In this document: one piece after another, positions 13,196 to 22,047 of the stretch
Position numbering within the stretch: the stretch's first letter is position 1
Layout: every line of letters begins with the position of its first letter
Assembly (NCBI GenBank): GCA_907165135.1
Contig: OU015568.1
Location: 6,448,001 to 6,512,000, forward strand
Origin: Oikopleura dioica
Taxonomy: Eukaryota; Animalia; Chordata
Length of the DNA stretch: 64,000 nucleotides
Direction of reading: 5' to 3'
Program-made: the position numbers and the translations under genes
Notes under the pieces: generated by a model
Databases searched by the model: none
Told to the model about the DNA's origin: nothing
The model's input: the letters and a program-made list of their open reading frames with translations, nothing else

Positions 13196-13891
13196 TTTAA
13201 GAATGATGAGTCTACTGTTTATTTATTTCATAATTATCAATTCATCAGAAGACTTTTGAAGAAAAATTATGCAACATTCAGCAGTTTGTAAAGATCGCTT
13301 TCCAACTTCTGAACTACTCAAGAAGATTAATTGAAGAACTTGAACTTTTTATTTGAAATCTTTCTCGTTCTCCACCAGTATTCAGTGGTGCACCCAGGCC
13401 AAAATCCCCAGGCTCGCTTTTTCGGATCTCCTTTTTGATATCGACTAACGCAGTTTGTTCTTGAGAGGATGCAACTTTCTATTCGATCATTCCACTCCTT
13501 GTTCCACTCATCAACACTTGTTAGAATACATTTCTTATTAAAAAAGAAAAAGCGCTTACGCTTTATCAGTAACCATGAAACAGTCTTTCCGTTCCTCAAG
13601 AAGCGCTTTGATGACATTTATTATAACTTGCAGCTGGCATTCTAAAAGAATATTTATTTGAAATAGCGATTCTTCCTTTCTACCGATCATAAATATCTCG
13701 GAATTGTGCCCTACTCCTGTCATCGGGCCTAATATATGGACAAGATTCGGCACCTTCTGATAAAATACTCCCCAAAAGGTCCTTTTCTCATTTCCTGGTT
13801 TCAGCATTTGAAGATGCGCATTGTCCTTAATGACAATGAATTCAAATTAAAGATTTTAGAAATACTTTTATCAGAAAATTAAGATTCGCGG

Positions 13892-14113
13892 CAGAGTTGG
13901 TAAAAAAGTATACTTCACTCGCCCTTCAGAATGAAGTATACTTCATGAAGTATACTTCAGGGCGTTGCAGGGCGTTGAAGGGCGTGAAGTGGAGGGAGGC
14001 GATTTTCTGGCAGTTAGATTTTCTGGCAGTTAGACTTTCTGGCAAAGGCGATTTTCTGGCAATGCCAGAAAATCTAATATGCCAGAAAGTCTAACTGCCA
14101 GAAAATCGCCTCT
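13892..14113. repeat. Left TIR of the MULE element: gaagtatacttc palindromes plus a hairpin of ~14-bp tandem ttttctggcagttag units
   Basis: Near-identical, apart from indels, to the reverse complement of the hairpin and outer end of 20957-21439. Confidence 0.85.
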
Positions 14114-14951
14114 TTTGATTTCACATCTATAGTTAATGATCCTGGAAGATAAAAAAACGGAGAGAAGAAGAGCTCGGAATTCATCTTCTGATTCTTCTGA
14201 GAAATAGTCAGGCGCGCGTGGGCGGCGCGCTCCTCCCTTATTCGCCGCGCTGTGCTCGCCTGAATTTAGTTGATAAATCAACGGTTTTTTTCAAGCGGAA
14301 ATGATGAAGATCAGAGAAGAATTAACTGCCAGAGGAATTAGAGAAGAATTAACTGCCTATAAAATTTTGCCCAATTCGCTTAAAACTTATGAACTGTGTT
14401 TCCGCTTTGTTTCGCCTCCAAACTTCAACCTTTCGTATTTAATGTATGATGCGTTTTCTTCTCTCTTTCGATGCACAAACCGTTGATAAGTTAAATGTTT
14501 CTATTTTTTTTCAATTTTTGACATTAAAGCTTTACGAGTTGCGAAACTAAAATACTGTCTATCATTTTTAAATTTTAATTCAGAATTTCAATTTCAGAAA
14601 GGACTCAGTGTTGAAAATTGACCATATAAAATAACAACGGGGAGAATATTGAACCCGTTATAATTGTGGGCCTCCAGAAGAATTTACCCGTTATAATTGT
14701 GCCCTTTCTTTAATTTAACATGATTTTGAACTCCTCGAAAGATATTGAAGAACTTCCTGCCAGTATTCTTCTCGCAGACAACAAAGAAAGCTTCCGAATT
14801 CTAGGAACTCGATGAATCAACAAAACGACGTGCTCGATTCCATCTTTAGGAGCTCCAACGAAGAAGAAAAATATATAGGAAAGGAGTTTCGAATTTTCTT
14901 TTGCAATCAATTTTTTCACTTATTGGTTTATTTTTCAGCGGCTTCAATTAA

Positions 14952-15208
14952 CTGAGACGTTACAAATTTACCGGTGCAAATGCGTCAAATACAGTGCTGT
15001 GATTGGCTGAATTAGGGACACGTAGTCCTTTGAAAAATGAAAAATCGCCATAAATCCGAAATTTTTTGAGATCTCGAAAATCTGAGATGATACTGGCATA
15101 GAGCTTGAGATTCTCCGTCGATACGTATAAAGATGTCTTGGGCTACAATGTAACCCTTAGGCGCTAGAGCAACAGCAAGTTTGCCCCGGTAATTTTGTAA
15201 CGGCTCTG
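14952..15208. mobile_element. Nested MITE with ~30-bp TIRs (CAGAG-like termini) inside the MULE element
   Basis: ctgagacgttacaaatttaccggtgcaaa versus tttgccccggtaattttgtaacggctctg; no TSD seen. Confidence 0.6.
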
Positions 15209-15278
15209 ACCTATGGAAATCGTCCGTAACGAATGTAACGAGTTTGATGAAAATGTAAGGAGCTTTTTTTATAGAACA

Positions 15279-18200
15279 TCAGAAGTCTTCTTCGTCGGAA
15301 GTGGCGAGTACTTCTTTTAATTGGCGCATCAAATCGTCATCGTCTTTTTATTATTTATCAAGTTATTCTAATTAAATACAATTAAATAAGAAACCATTAT
15401 ATACGTGTAAACAATCCTGGGATATCTGCTTTTCTCATTTCTTCGCGTTTTCGCAATTTCGCATTTTCCGCCTTCATTTTTTCCAGCTCTTCCCGTAACT
15501 CTGCGATCAACTCTTCATTTTGTTCTTTTTTTCTTTGAATGGTTTGACGCCGTTTATTTGCTATATCAGCATAGTAGCCCTAAATATTCTGCTATTTTCT
15601 TAAAGAAACATACAAGCATTACCTTAGGATCATTTTCTCTTTTTTTTCGATTTCTTTCTTTAAGAATTTTCTTTTCTTTCGCAATTTGGGCTGCCAAACG
15701 CACTTCGGCTTCAGTTTTCTTCTTTTTCTTTTTTGGTGGGGAATCATGCTCGCAATAGGTTGATTTTTTCGCATTCCGCTTCACTTTTGCGCACAAACTA
15801 CGCGTATTTTGCGAAGATTCGGGGCGCTCATCTAGAATAATTAACATTCTGCTTGATAAAACTAAACTTACGATCCGATTCAGAATCTGACAATGAAAGA
15901 TCCCGCGTTTTGCGCTGTTTTGCGGATTTTGCGCTGCGAATATACTTCCGTGGCTGCTTGGGTTCAGATAGAACCAGCTTTTCGGGACTAGTTCTGTCAT
16001 CAAAATTCCGGTAAGAATCAGATGTTGGACGAGAACGATTAGCTTGTCCGGCTTCGTCATTTTCTTAAATGAAAGTCATTTATTTTTTAAATATGGACAG
16101 TTACCTTGCTCCGATTCTGAAGACGAAGGACGATTTGGAAACTGTTTTCTGATCGTTTCATCTATCTCATCGGTTTTATCCAGAAGTCGTTCCCAATGTA
16201 TTGGAGATGGCGATTTTTCAACTAGAAATATTAAATTTTTGATATTTACATTTTTGATATATTACAGTTTTCAGGCTCACGATCCTCATTGTCCGACGGT
16301 AAAGAGTCCACTGGAGGTGGGTCGAACTCATGGATAACAGCTGGCACATCGACTTCATCATTGCTCGTCTCCTCATCGACTCTTCTTTCCACTCTTTGAA
16401 CTGGCTGAGCGATTGGCGCCGCAACTCTTCTCAAATCGAATTCTCCTCCTTGCTGAGCGAAAGGATCTGGGTCAACTTGCTCACCAGCTGTTTCTTGCTC
16501 ATCGCGAACTGGGGACATCACAGGCATTGCTTCTTGAAACTGGTATGACTAAATAATTTTTATTTTTGTATAAAAAATAGTAACTATACGTCAGCTGTTG
16601 ATTCTTTAATCAAATTTTGAAATACAGCAGTTTCTGGTTGCGTGGCGTTGTTGATAAAATGTCGGAGTTTCTGAGTAGATTTCAATGACTCGGCCTTTGA
16701 TCTGGCCCTCATCAAGCCGAAGCCGACAGAAACAATTGCTTCTTCGATTGAGCCATTTTCTGCGCATTTTTTGTCAAATCTTGCTAGCTGCTCGTAGCGT
16801 ACAACCGCAACTAAGGCGCACAATCTGTCATTTTTAGTACTTTGCTGGCTGTTGCTCTCAAGCTTAGCAATTTCCGTACTGAAGCTTTCACTTTTAAAGC
16901 CATTAGCAATGGAGATGACCGTAGATAGCTCTGTCGCATTGTTGATTCCTTGATCCACCAGGGATGAGTTCTAAACATTTAATTTTAGTTGGAATCGCAT
17001 CTTCACGAATTCGATGTTTTTACAAGATTTCCCATCGAAAAAAAGGTAACTTACCATGATTTCAAGACTGTTATTAGTCAAGAATTTTGAACCATTCCTC
17101 GCTCCTATCGATAATGCAAGGGCCCATGAACTAGGAGGGAATTTAGCATCGTCATTCAAGTACGTCGTAGAAAGATATCTGTAGAACTCATTAATCTCGT
17201 CTTTGATTAGTGGTGTAGACAGTTCATCAAGTGTTCGACGCAAAAGCTGCATAAATGTGTCGTAGAATGTAGGTTCGGTCAAGTGAATGAATGGGATCGC
17301 ATGGATGAGTGCTTGGAGTATCTTTCCATTTTTCTCCCAGAGTGCCAACAGTCCATGACTTTGTAAATATCTTCTAACACTCTGTAACCAATGAAAGTAG
17401 CACCCAACCATGCGTAGATTCTTCTCCGGCCATGTTTCGCGAATCGAATTTCTGAGCCCAGGTTCGAAATCGGACGAGACAGTTGTAAATTCAGAATCAG
17501 GACAAAGTTTCTTTTTGTAGATCAATTTACAGTTTTTTCAGGAAAATCGGCTGCTCTGCTATTCAAAACTACCGAACGGCCGATTGTGGTCCTCATCAAC
17601 GTTATTACACACGACAAATTCGCTGCCGAACCAAGTAAGTTCAAAATTTTCAATATTGATCATTTCCTTTAAAGCCTCAAAGACAATCTTGTAGCCTTCT
17701 TTAGACTGACCCTTGAGAATAATAAAGAATCTAGGATTAACACTATCATCTCGGTCTCTTGATCCAATAATGAGGAGTTGACGGTAGCCAAACTTCTTTT
17801 GCTGGCCTTTCGTAAAGAATTTACCGTCAACAAACCAGTGTTTTGAAGAGGTCAGCATGCGCAAATCGTGTTGAGTCGCAAAAGCTAGAGCTTCATCCCA
17901 TATCGGGCTTCGTTGTTCCGGCGAAAGAAACTCATTCATTAGAATCCATTTTGTTTCACCATCGCCTTTTCGTGATTTATTAATGAATTATTACTTTTCA
18001 ATGTTCGTTTCGTGAAACAAAAATGATGTCCTCGTTGTCTCCACCTTACCCCTCATCTTTCGAATCGTTTTTAATCAAGCTACATTTGGTTTAGGTTCCA
18101 TCCGACTAAAGACAGTAAAGTACAATGCAAAACACGAGCACGAATATGTCAATAACTTCAAAGTCTTGCAAAACTCGTTCAAAAAATGGGCGTAGATAAG

Positions 18201-20645
18201 GTTTGTCTTCATCAAAATTATAACTCTACACAGAAACAAGAAATTAGACTACGTTGACGCGCCACAAAGTTATGAAGCAGATTCTGAAACCTTCGCAAGA
18301 CACAATATTCTCTGCGAGAAGAAAGGACTCTGGACTCTGCCAGCTGATTATCCACAGGTAAAGCGTATCACTCAGAACTTTCTTTACAGTTATTCAGACA
18401 ATTCTTGAGTGCTTCCAGCGAGGAAGAGAGACCGCCAGTGATAATGCTATCATTTGAGGCACTCCGACGCCAGATTTGACAGATTACACGACCCGTACTT
18501 ATGGCGAGTTCGCTGCAACATCTCAATACCTGGCGAATTCACTGAAAAAGCACGGACTTATCAGTGGAGAAAGCAAAATTGCGATCTACTCGTCGAATTG
18601 CTACGAATACGACGCAGTAATCATTGGAGGATACTATCAAAATATATGCAATGTTTCGCTTTACGATACTTTTGGTGAACAAGCAGTCAAATACATTCTC
18701 GAGCACGTAAGTTTACAACTTCTTTACGAGATTATTTTTACTTTTTCTTCAGATTGAAGCTCCAATCTGCTTCGTTCAAAATCAAAAGAAACTTGACCTC
18801 ATTCTCAAAATCAAGCCTGCTCATCTTCAAACAATCGTTGTGTTTCGAAAATTCAAGAAGGTCAAGTCCTCCAATTATAAAATCATAAGTTTCGACGATT
18901 TTATTGCAATCGGAAAAGACAGCTCGTTTGATAATGTTCCGCCGACTTCTTCAGGTAAAAATGATAAAAATAGGGGCGATCATTTAATTTCATTATTCAG
19001 ACATTGCTACGATCAATTACACATCCGACACGACTGGCGATCCGAAAGGCGTCGTCTTGACTCACAAGAACATCTGCACCGTCTGCTGTGGCATTACAAT
19101 CTTCTCGGTTAAAGAGCCTTGGAAAACAAGCGACGTCTGGTTCAGCTATTTGCCGATGGCTAATATTTTTTTAAACTTGTTGACGTGCCCGACATGGATT
19201 ATTATGCGCGCGAAGGAAAAGGAGAAATCTGCTTCCGTGGCGACAACGTCATGCAAAGTAATTTCCTTTCACCACTGTCAAGTGTCTCACACTTCGTTCA
19301 ATGGTTTAAAAAGTTTTTCGACGCTAACTATCAGGTAAATCAAAAAGAACGCGAAATCCTTTTTCAATTCTGATTTCAAAGGGAGAACCTCTTGGTCCCG
19401 TTCATGCGAGAGCGAACGCTGGTGTGACTCCCGCTTCAAATTCGCTGCAGTTTCTACAACAGCAAAGAAAGCACCCGCTCGAGCTGGAGCTCCCGCTGCT
19501 CGGGTCCTCGAAGCCCCAAGAACTCCTGCATCGTAAGAGAAGCCGCTTGCGGCTTCGAATTTATGTTAGTTCAGGGAAAGACAAAGGAAAAAGAAGAACG
19601 CACGGCCTCTGCTTTTCTACCGTATCAAGGATGTCCCAAGCTCTAAAGGATAATTCAACTCAAGATTTAACTAAACTATATTCACTGTCATTTCTTTCGT
19701 GCATCTGTGCTCGGTCAAATAAATCACTTTCCTAGTACTGTCATCCAGTCTTCCAAGCGTCGAGGATCAGGAACTGTAGCGGCCTTTATTTTTCTTTCGT
19801 ACTTTCTGGAATTCTGAGCAAGACGTCTCATCTCCTTTTTCGTGAAAAGATTGCCTCTTTCCATGCTCGAAAGTTGTGAATCTTTTTGAACTTCTCCACG
19901 AATTGTCTGTTGACTTTTTGGGCGAATTTGGTTCCTGTTGAGCATGGACACAGTCGTTGCGTACTGTAATCGCTTCTTTTCGAGTGCATCGTTCTTCAGA
20001 CATTTATTCATGTGAATGTCTACTTTCGACTCTAGCTTTCCACATCGCCAATTGCTGAGCTCAAAAAAACGAGGAGATTCCATATCAACAACTTTTGCAA
20101 ACATCCAAATCTTCGTTGAACAGCGGAATGAAGCGTCTTTCGAATATGATTGATTTTCACACTCGACTCGCATCTTGAAACGGAAGTCAGGATCGTCGTT
20201 TTTAGAATGCAGAATCGTTTTCTTCGCTTTTCTTGCTTTGAAAGCAAATGATCTGGAAGCAACTTTGACGAGGAAGGATGCATTGTTTTTTGAGTTTCGT
20301 TGAATCGTTACCAAGGCAGGGTTTTCGACAGTACCACCAATGTTTTCTTACACGTTTTATAAAAATTCATTGACAAAGGCCACTTTTGACCCATTTATTC
20401 AAGATTAATAGCTGTAGCAAACATAAATCAGCTTCTTCCGGGAATTTCTGTGTTAATCACCCGGTGTTTGCATCTGATTTCGAGTACTTGGTCACAGTGA
20501 GCACCCACTGAGATAATGGCGCACGCAAATGCTTTTTGAAACTGAACTTGTTATAAAACTATCCTGAAAATTCTTCCTCAGAAGGTGGTGGAATCGGTGT
20601 CAGTTTCAACATTTTTCTATCCGCATTCTCTTCATCATCCTCCAT
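15279..20645 (-). CDS. MULE transposase (FLYWCH/WRKY-like N-terminal domain, DDE core, basic coiled-coil tail), predicted 11 exons
   Basis: Core: [42 protein letters not shown]. Exon 20346-19732 has C..C..H..C and joins in phase to 17965 (VLG|DGETKWIL). All junctions can be put in phase, four of them needing GA donors. Confidence 0.8.
18186..19260 (+). pseudogene. Long-chain acyl-CoA synthetase (ACSL-like) fragment lying in the transposase intron
   Basis: [38 protein letters not shown] (G to D in the AMP-binding loop), FSYLPMA jumps directly to [23 protein letters not shown] (large internal deletion). In-frame TGA near 18455; host-type introns retained; no C-terminus. Confidence 0.85.
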
Positions 20646-20956
20646 TTTCTCAGAAAAATCAAAATCTAACTTTTCAGCTGCCTGTTAACCCGTTTGTTAC
20701 TCCGAAAATAGCAAGAACGAACTGTGGATGCTGCCCTCATTCTATTTTTAGCGCAGAAATTTCAATTCCAAATTCGTCGTCTTTTTTAGCGCCCTGAATA
20801 GTCGGCTTTTAGATCAAACGCTCCCGTCGAAAGGTGCAAACTCCTGCTGAAACTGCTCCGGAATGAAATTTGTGTGATAATCACCAGTTTTTCGAATTTA
20901 TAAATGATTTTATTAAAAAGAGTTTTTTGCAGAGTTTCAAATAATATGCATACTAA

Positions 20957-21439
20957 AAAGGCGATTTTCTGGCAGTTAGACTTTCTGGCAGTTAGATTTT
21001 CTGGCAAAGGCGATTTTCTGGAAGTTAGATTTTCTGGCAGTGCCAGAAAATCGCCTTTGCCAGAAAGTCTAACTGCCAGAAAATCTAACTGCCAGAAAAT
21101 CGCCTCTCTCCGTGAAGTGTACTTCCGCCCTTCCCTCTACTTCAACCGCCCTTCCGCCCTTCACTCTACTTCAAATTGGTTCTGTCGGCCATCAGAATCC
21201 ATCCGCCAGAATTTTTTCAAATTTCGCGCTTATTGGCTCACAGGCGCCATGATTTAAATCACGCTGATTGTGGCAGATGAAGTGGCAGCTAAAGTTTTCG
21301 ATAAGAACCGATAGCTGAAGTATACTTCAGCGCGTGAAGTATACTTCAGAGCCTTTTCGTACTTCACCGCCCTTCAAGAATGAAGGGCGCCCTGCAGATT
21401 TTTGAAGGGCGGGGGGAAGTATACTTTTTTCCAGCTCTG
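20957..21439. repeat. Right TIR of the MULE element (longer, with an extra internal segment)
   Basis: Hairpin of gattttctggcagtta units followed by gcccttc and gaagtatacttc motifs to ctctg. Confidence 0.85.
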
Positions 21440-22047
21440 ATTCGCGGTCCAATCAAACCCTGTTGCAAAAATAATCACATCGAGTTCATGCTGAGTATCC
21501 TTCGTGACAATCCCATTTTCGCTCAGTTCAATAATTCCAGAGTTGTCCAATTCGTAGCATGGCTCATTGAGAGCCGAGTAAAACTCGTCAGAAATCATGA
21601 TCCTTTTGCAGCCAAGAAGAAAATCAGGAATCATCGCTTCTGCGACCCGTTCATCCTTGACTTCTTTTCTGACTCTCTGGGCATTCTGTTCACACATCCA
21701 GTTGTTGACTCCAAGTTTCCAGAAACGCAAGAGAAGGAAGTATCGGATCTCTCGGTAGATGAATTGAGACCATCTGTAAATTATTCCAAATGGGAATATC
21801 GCTAGAATGCTTTTAGCGAAGTATGAGTATGCAAATTGATCTCGAGGCAGAATAAATGCTGGGCTTCGCTGAAAATGAACAAGCTTTTTAACTTTTAAGC
21901 GACGGAGAATTGTGGGTAAAACTTGGACAGCGGATGCTCCAGAACCGATGATCCCAACACGTTTCTCTGTCAAATCAAGATCCTTTGGCCACTGGGATGT
22001 GTGAATCTTCAGTCCCTTGAAATTCTCGAAGCCTTGAATGTCTCCCC

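Follow-up and report, generated by a model that had tools for sequence, protein, structure and literature searches.

In plants, gene capture by Mutator transposons ranks among the main routes by which exons are shuffled. The carriers involved there are non-autonomous, and the mechanism is still debated. The 64,000-nucleotide stretch of the Oikopleura dioica genome analysed here (GenBank assembly GCA_907165135.1, contig OU015568.1, positions 6,448,001 to 6,512,000 of the forward strand), hereafter the window and numbered from its first letter, raises the question of how a transposon can carry pieces of host genes and still keep a transposase gene. It contains a Mutator-like element of 7119 bp with foldback terminal inverted repeats (positions 13992-21110), and the transposase gene on the minus strand of this element is interrupted by 1766 nt filled with host-derived sequence. 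An original prediction, made from the sequence alone, had described it as a Pack-MULE-like element storing a broken ACSL gene in an intron of its transposase. In our judgement this is likely a coding-competent transposon of the Mutator superfamily, in which a transposase intron with GA-AG boundaries has been filled with a mosaic from three host donors, and the loaded element has been amplified to five copies.

The loaded element is young and has transposed

The element is delimited by terminal inverted repeats (TIRs) and by a perfect 9-bp target-site duplication (TSD), as follows.

13983-13991, no strand: left TSD copy, 9 bp, CGTGAAGTG
13992-14126, plus strand: left foldback-type TIR, with GATTTTCTGGCAGTTAGA subrepeats and the terminus GAGGGAGGCG
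20944-21110, minus strand: right TIR
21111-21119, no strand: right TSD copy, 9 bp, CGTGAAGTG

The TIR arms are ~120-135 bp long and contain internal subrepeats, and 87 nt of them pair at 98%. The cargo and the transposase gene both lie inside these arms, where the original prediction had placed them.

The genome search that had been suggested for the ACSL parent and for further copies located the parent on C5 and revealed five copies of the element, namely that of the window and those at C4:6.85 Mb, C1:12.45 Mb, C1:2.37 Mb and C5:13.20 Mb. The five copies share 99.87-99.93% identity across 7.1 kb, and each is flanked by a distinct perfect 9-bp TSD. Multiple alignment of the copies contains one substitution, and the remaining differences are all homopolymer-length indels, as expected from an assembly based on Nanopore reads, which the published O. 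dioica assembly OKI2018_I69 is (PMC8008620). The element is young and was very recently active. The full 1766-nt cargo-bearing stretch is present in five of the five copies, and no cargo-free copy was found among the element copies in this genome. As all of these nearly identical copies bear the cargo, the loaded element itself has transposed. In addition, the TIRs of the element occur as inverted pairs at dozens of short loci, which are derivatives resembling miniature inverted-repeat transposable elements (MITEs).

The cargo is a mosaic of three unlinked host loci

The interrupting stretch consists of four segments, all matched to donors elsewhere in the genome.

17991-18231, plus strand: cargo A1, intron sequence of an EB1/CH-domain gene, donor C5:8788258-8788017, 95.9% (blastn)
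18231-19289, plus strand: cargo B, fragment of an ACSL-like (AMP-binding) gene, donor C5:11757347-11755755, ~96.5%
19293-19533, plus strand: cargo A2, the same EB1 gene continued, donor C5:8787902-8787661, 93.0% (blastn)
19569-19695, plus strand: cargo C, unique stretch ~400 bp upstream of an NPRL2-like gene, donor C2:9955755-9955629, 96.9% (blastn)

The order of the cargo is therefore EB1, ACSL, EB1 and the NPRL2-upstream piece, drawn from three unlinked host loci that are each unique in the genome and 93-97% identical to the cargo. The ACSL fragment of the original prediction was thus confirmed, but its single-donor origin was not. The EB1 donor gene has a CH domain and EB1-like sequence; the A1 and A2 parts lie 114 bp apart in it, and in the element the ACSL piece replaces those 114 bp. 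Where the segments meet, there is microhomology of 0-1 nt or a filler of 3 nt.

Cargo B, which matches Pfam AMP-binding at 18476-18754 on the plus strand (6.7e-12), is composed of two pieces by blastn: 18231-19169 corresponds to C5:11757347-11756412 and 19171-19289 to C5:11755873-11755755, at 96.4-96.6% identity. The parent gene, at C5:11.7557-11.7574 Mb, is 96% identical, and there its other exons are still intact. Alignment against this parent agrees with the lesions that had been predicted from the fragment itself: a TGT codon has become TGA, the motif TSGTTG has become TSDTTG, the introns of the parent are kept, and the large deletion amounts to 538 bp of the parent skipped at 19170.

The transfer is shown to have run from host to element, because the donors are complete single-copy genes whereas the cargo is truncated, decayed and chimeric. 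Moreover, the divergence between cargo and donors is 3-7%, compared to ~0.003% between the element copies; the capture is therefore much older than the current burst, and the lineage has lasted in its loaded state.

The cargo-bearing stretch is probably an intron of the transposase gene

The transposase gene on the minus strand would encode ~900 amino acids and would begin with three GA-AG introns, followed by ordinary short GT-AG introns. From its start, the gene reads as follows.

20564-20645, minus strand: exon 1 with ATG, open frame
20347-20563, minus strand: first intron, GA-AG (CAG/GATAGT...GTAAG/AA, phase 1), with a 9-nt closing stem
19732-20346, minus strand: exon 2, N-terminal region with C-x12-C-x35-H-x3-C, a putative DNA-binding zinc finger; dN/dS 0.13
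17966-19731, minus strand: probable GA-AG intron holding the cargo, 1766 nt (TAG/GAAAGT...GAAAAG/GC, phase 1); stem 19718-19727 / 17972-17981
17667-17965, minus strand: exon 3 (GDGETKW...WFVDG...FEALK), with the first catalytic D of the MULE core; dN/dS 0.18
17511-17666, minus strand: third intron, GA-AG (AAG/GAAATG...AAAAAG/AAA, phase 0), stem GATCAAT/ATTGATC
17055-17510, minus strand: exon 4 (KLCPDSEF...TNNSLEIM), with the second catalytic D (SDFE), CxxH (GCYFH) and the NNSLE glutamate; dN/dS 0.11 against L056
15515-17054, minus strand: downstream transposase exons joined by short GT-AG introns, corresponding to database gene model P0002

The exon pieces are all open, and the downstream GT-AG introns are empty and 40-80 nt long. 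Exon 2 ends in a split Gly codon at 19732 and exon 3 resumes with G/GC GAT GGT (GDGETKW...) at 17965, in phase 1, so that the in-phase join across a 1766-nt GA-AG gap can be read directly. GA-AG is the commonest non-canonical intron class of O. dioica, with AG before the GA and A after it (PMC7072748), and in the assembly OKI2018_I69 of 64.3 Mbp, 11% of introns are non-GT/AG and the median intron is 49 bp long (PMC8008620). As GA-AG introns are ordinary in this species, the type of splice site is not itself remarkable here. The donors at 19731 (TAG/GAAAGT) and 17666 (AAG/GAAATG) match the AG/GAA context of the species.

A related element, L056/L063, was found in two marine metagenome assemblies, and the two versions of this element are 99.7% identical to each other. 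Its amino acid identity to the window element is 75.5% in the N-terminal exon, 65% in exon 3 and 70% in exon 4. Exon 2 of L056 ends with ...VLG/GAAAGTGATTTA and exon 3 starts at ...TAAATCACAAAAAG/GCGATGG, with boundaries and phase as in the window. At a dS of ~1-2 between the two elements, the dN/dS ratio comes to 0.127 in the N-terminal exon, 0.183 in exon 3 and 0.111 in exon 4. These low values at such a distance indicate that all three exon pieces stayed functional while they were interrupted.

The cargo-bearing stretch is closed by a perfect 10-nt stem, formed by intron positions +5 to +14 and a site that lies 6 nt ahead of the acceptor, and a stem of equal length arose in just 5-7 of 2000 shuffles. 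The arms are GTGATTTATT/AATAAATCAC in the window and GTGATTTAAT/ATTAAATCAC in L056, which amounts to a compensatory change from U-A to A-U. The closing stems of all three GA-AG introns start at intron position +5 or +6. Given the donor context, the boundaries and phase in L056, the dN/dS values, the closing stem, the recurring design and the open exons, the cargo-bearing stretch is probably an intron. This comparative evidence, with coding pieces that are intact and under purifying selection, speaks for the original view that the cargo sits in a transposase intron and leaves the open reading frame (ORF) intact.

The two other GA-AG introns can also be followed across relatives. The first one (20563-20347) has a GA donor in the window and a GT donor in L056, at the same site and in the same phase. 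The third one (17666-17511) has AAG/GAA...AAG/ boundaries that the window shares with L056 and with L036, a relative within this genome; removal of this intron gives ALK/KLCP, matching ALKSLSP of the homologs with no indel. Its closing stem appears in both the minimum-free-energy (MFE) and the centroid folds of the window and L056, despite different interiors, for each of which there is a short genomic match to a possible host donor. The original prediction had read this intron, from EMINI... onward, as the last part of the DDE exon; the exon is real from 17965, but that part of it is not coding in the revised gene structure.

Other splice sites fitted less well. A canonical GT-AG pairing of the donor GGAAA/GTGATT with the acceptor AAAAG/G is out of frame, and the sole in-frame canonical pairing, with the acceptor CGAAG/C, would lose 20 conserved residues. 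For the intron at 17511-17666, a donor placed after ...EMINI gives TG-AG in L056, whereas AAG/GAA fits three lineages and the ALKxLxP spacing.

As a separate observation, window positions 17581-17662, in the 5' part of the third GA-AG intron and including a stem arm, resemble C1:10001927-10002010 (84 nt, 84%). The latter lies in a 96-codon open frame; it may have served as a donor, descend from the element as a relic, or be a related stem-closed intron.

Related elements carry different cargo in the same probable intron

Within the same intron boundaries, L056 has an unrelated interior of ~1 kb, with matches of 81-96% to at least five other unique loci of this genome, including VPS28. Where the window element and L056 cease to be homologous, the stem arms are only a few bases away. 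The in-genome relative L036, which is 27-33% identical, has the GA-AG intron position at ALK/ and a phase-1 acceptor at the cargo intron; upstream of this DDE-exon acceptor it matches C2:7093826 (92%), two neighbouring pieces at C1:10.886 Mb (97% and 94%) and C5:10035652 (98%). Three lineages are shown by this comparison to hold three unrelated host mosaics in the same predicted intron. In a fourth relative, L037, there are two short matches only.

The EB1 and ACSL pieces of the window element are antisense to the transposase, and so is the VPS28 piece of L056. Splice-motif counts were uninformative on cargo orientation, as a control region gave a like result, and a six-frame comparison resolved the orientation for VPS28 alone. 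The fragments of certain orientation (EB1, ACSL and VPS28) are therefore three, all antisense, which is too few for a test of bias.

These fillings lead us to a bolder proposal, which we rate as slightly short of probable: the stem-closed GA-AG intron upstream of the DDE exon may be a standing cargo bay that is refilled repeatedly, while the element stays autonomous and spreads host fragments and antisense transcripts. If so, the closing stem would keep a foreign-filled intron of 1-2 kb spliceable in a highly compact chordate genome.

The transposase belongs to the Mutator superfamily

In domain searches, the exon pieces were used one at a time. The ORF of exon 4 has 215 homologs at E<=1e-3 (phmmer against 1.84 billion representative proteins). 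Among the homologs scanned, Pfam MULE (PF10551) is above threshold in P0008, P0017, P0038, P0041, P0070 and P0026, and one of them, P0017, has FLYWCH plus MULE. Exons 3 and 4 align to abutting parts of the homologs, with the motifs WFVDG, SDFE, GCYFH and NNSLE, and the C-x12-C-x35-H-x3-C pattern is invariant in the alignment of the N-terminal exon. By these sequence features, the element belongs to the Mutator superfamily, because MULE-core motifs and MULE-domain homologs are combined with 9-bp TSDs and long TIRs; the animal Mutator assignment made at the outset holds. The downstream exons (P0002) matched no Pfam domain, Ulp1 included.

Several other loci of the genome resemble parts of the element. 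L052 (C1:5818500-5823500) and L053 (C5:10114000-10119500) have intact intron-less ORFs of 571-572 amino acids with a MULE domain; they are similar to each other and represent a MULE family of their own or else domesticated genes. L050 (G000:C4:5828602-5832039) has an intact ORF of 351 amino acids (1192-2247) that resembles the region of exons 1 and 2, with a PPxEEEF motif, the C..C..H..C pattern and 26-28% identity, and with no adjoining DDE part; it may be a DNA-binding module that was domesticated or orphaned. L055 (G000:C1:8409500-8412700) is a TIR-flanked derivative of ~1.3 kb with two inverted relics of the N-terminal exon at 66-69% amino acid identity, and is a foldback-style non-autonomous relative.

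Alternative explanations

A number of observations weigh against a coding-competent element with a spliced cargo intron. The exon pieces of the window match Pfam MULE weakly (E=0.07, exon 4 alone). The N-terminal exon has no recognised domain in Pfam (E<=10) or in the Atlas search, its comparison by hhalign with the FLYWCH region of P0017 gave a probability of 0.5%, and its AlphaFold2 model, with a pLDDT of 47, is too poor for use. The gene model P0002 spans the downstream exons only, and no spliced transposase protein was found in the protein collections searched. At 98% likeness, one read fell on 15200-21150 in four runs (three of poly-A RNA and one single-cell), in which the presence of the lineage was uncontrolled. 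The intron of 1.77 kb is far above the genome median, and several element copies have frame-shifting homopolymer differences, which may be Nanopore errors or real.

Some of these points would also suit a transposase broken by its cargo, with the N-terminal ORF stopping at a TGA, the DDE part left without a start, and the five copies moved in trans as passengers. An in-frame TGA directly follows ...VLGK, the DDE exon has no conserved ATG (the Met of MNEF is Ala in L056), a spliced transcript was not seen in the four runs, with their uncontrolled lineage presence, and other MULE-type ORFs, those of 571-572 amino acids, exist in the genome. However, the interruption, its boundaries and its phase also occur in a lineage at a dS of ~1, and dN/dS of 0.11-0.18 on all flanking pieces is unexpected for pieces long dead. 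Moreover, GA-AG in the AG/GAA context is a normal donor in O. dioica, and the other MULE-type ORFs are just ~24% identical to the element transposase, with no matching transposase source above ~50% identity found elsewhere in this genome. We thus regard a broken transposase as unlikely, though worth keeping in mind. Still less credence is given to a functional cargo, whose antisense RNA to ACSL and EB1 would feed small-RNA pathways and alter the expression of the host genes or of the element, an idea that is compatible with a coding-competent carrier. It draws on the antisense orientation of the EB1 and ACSL pieces, and likewise of the VPS28 piece in L056, and on identical runs of up to 218 nt between the cargo and the ACSL parent. 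Yet the cargo, which has gained a stop codon and a motif change and has diverged by 3-7%, is decaying as neutral DNA would; its content is wholly different in related elements, which points to tolerance rather than selection of particular targets; and orientation is established for only three fragments. An independent small mobile element nested in the MULE, or an assembly chimera, is a very improbable reading of the 1.7-kb block. The block is indeed flanked by the 10-nt inverted repeat GTGATTTATT/AATAAATCAC and by a GAAA direct repeat, but the same block ends surround unrelated content in L056. Both readings were rejected, since the block with its flanks occurs nowhere in the genome beyond the five MULE copies and the donor genes, and the same structure at five loci with different TSDs excludes local misassembly.

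Comparison with known systems

As described in PMC6446971, citing Jiang et al. 2004, plant Pack-MULEs have MULE TIRs and 9-bp TSDs around chimeric, intron-containing fragments of unlinked genes. The element of O. dioica likewise has host-gene fragments between Mutator TIRs and was amplified by transposition in its loaded state. Unlike Pack-MULEs, in which the transposase is lost, it has an apparently complete transposase gene, with the cargo in its intron, and a chordate host. It works like a Pack-MULE but is not one in the strict sense of a non-autonomous element with no transposase gene, so that the Pack-MULE-like label of the original prediction, given for intron-containing host fragments between TIRs, was right in substance.

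Among animal systems, Pack-TIRs such as Ssk-FB4 of Drosophila (Tan et al. 2021, PMC8277862) share the capture of host sequence, the spread to many copies with distinct TSDs of 9-10 bp, and template switching as the proposed mechanism; those carriers are non-autonomous, and neither cargo in a transposase intron nor recurrence at one site is described there. Phantom and Tm1 of root-knot nematodes (PMC3169594) resemble the element in their animal MULE transposase, foldback-like TIRs with subrepeats, 9-bp TSDs and MITE-like derivatives. However, Phantom is defined by a FLYWCH finger, which is undetectable in the element apart from its CCHC pattern, and Tm1 carries a histone-hairpin motif, compared to the gene mosaics found here (PMC3169594). 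Turmoil-1 of C. elegans, an early example of such capture in animals, is also a DNA transposon with pieces of host protein-coding genes, but they lie in its terminal repeats (PMC2572040) and not in a transposase intron. With the GA-AG introns of O. dioica (PMC7072748; PMC8008620) the cargo intron shares the GA donor, the AG before it, the A after it and the AG acceptor, whereas its 1766 nt and the foreign host DNA inside set it apart from typical introns of the species, with their median of 49 bp (PMC8008620). In the literature searched, there was no description of cargo in a transposase intron combined with amplification of the loaded element and independent fillings of the same intron, and no paper linking Oikopleura with Mutator elements in such a way.

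Other sequences in and around the window copy

A unit of ~260 bp with 27-nt inverted ends (14954-14980 / 15180-15206) lies downstream of the transposase gene at 14954-15214. It is common to all five copies, occurs at many other genomic loci with 87-95% identity, and is probably a nested MITE. The window copy sits between minus-strand exons of a flavin/Baeyer-Villiger-type monooxygenase gene (13400-13991 and 21111-21973), with ...GIIGSGASAVQ... upstream and ...GPMTGVGHNSE... downstream. When the element and one TSD copy are removed in silico, the monooxygenase pieces do not form one continuous ORF, so that the insertion looks intronic or within repeat-rich spacer, not cleanly mid-exon. Further along, a long tandem array at 23124-24548 has open frames on both strands with repeats of ~19 amino acids (GPGLPFGSAWPRLRLNCVN and its complement), arranged as two inverted blocks.

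Proposed mechanism and implications

Most likely, the mosaic (A-B-B'-A-C) was copied by serial template switching during gap repair or at stalled replication, as suggested by this pattern together with minimal microhomology and filler. Template switching is the model proposed for Pack-MULEs and animal Pack-TIRs (PMC8277862). The hairpin-prone stem ends may be where synthesis leaves and re-enters the element, because homology between the lineages stops near the stem arms. A coding-competent element would retain only such insertions as splicing removes; with the cargo in an intron, the reading frame of the transposase would survive after splicing, and antisense gene pieces would add no exon or splice signals on the sense strand. 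The loaded element would then have kept transposing, giving rise to five essentially identical copies. In this scheme we infer the actual splicing, the encoded protein as the driver of the burst, the mechanism of capture and any antisense effect.

Altogether, the locus offers a young, five-copy and likely coding-competent carrier in a 64-Mb chordate genome, with identifiable donors and exact junctions. With three independent fillings of one predicted intron to compare, direct tests become possible of how capture works and which sites it prefers. The locus can further show, as a natural experiment, whether long GA-AG introns are spliced in O. dioica with the help of closing stems. With the cargo probably held in an intron, a transposon need not lose its capacity to encode the transposase when it captures genes.

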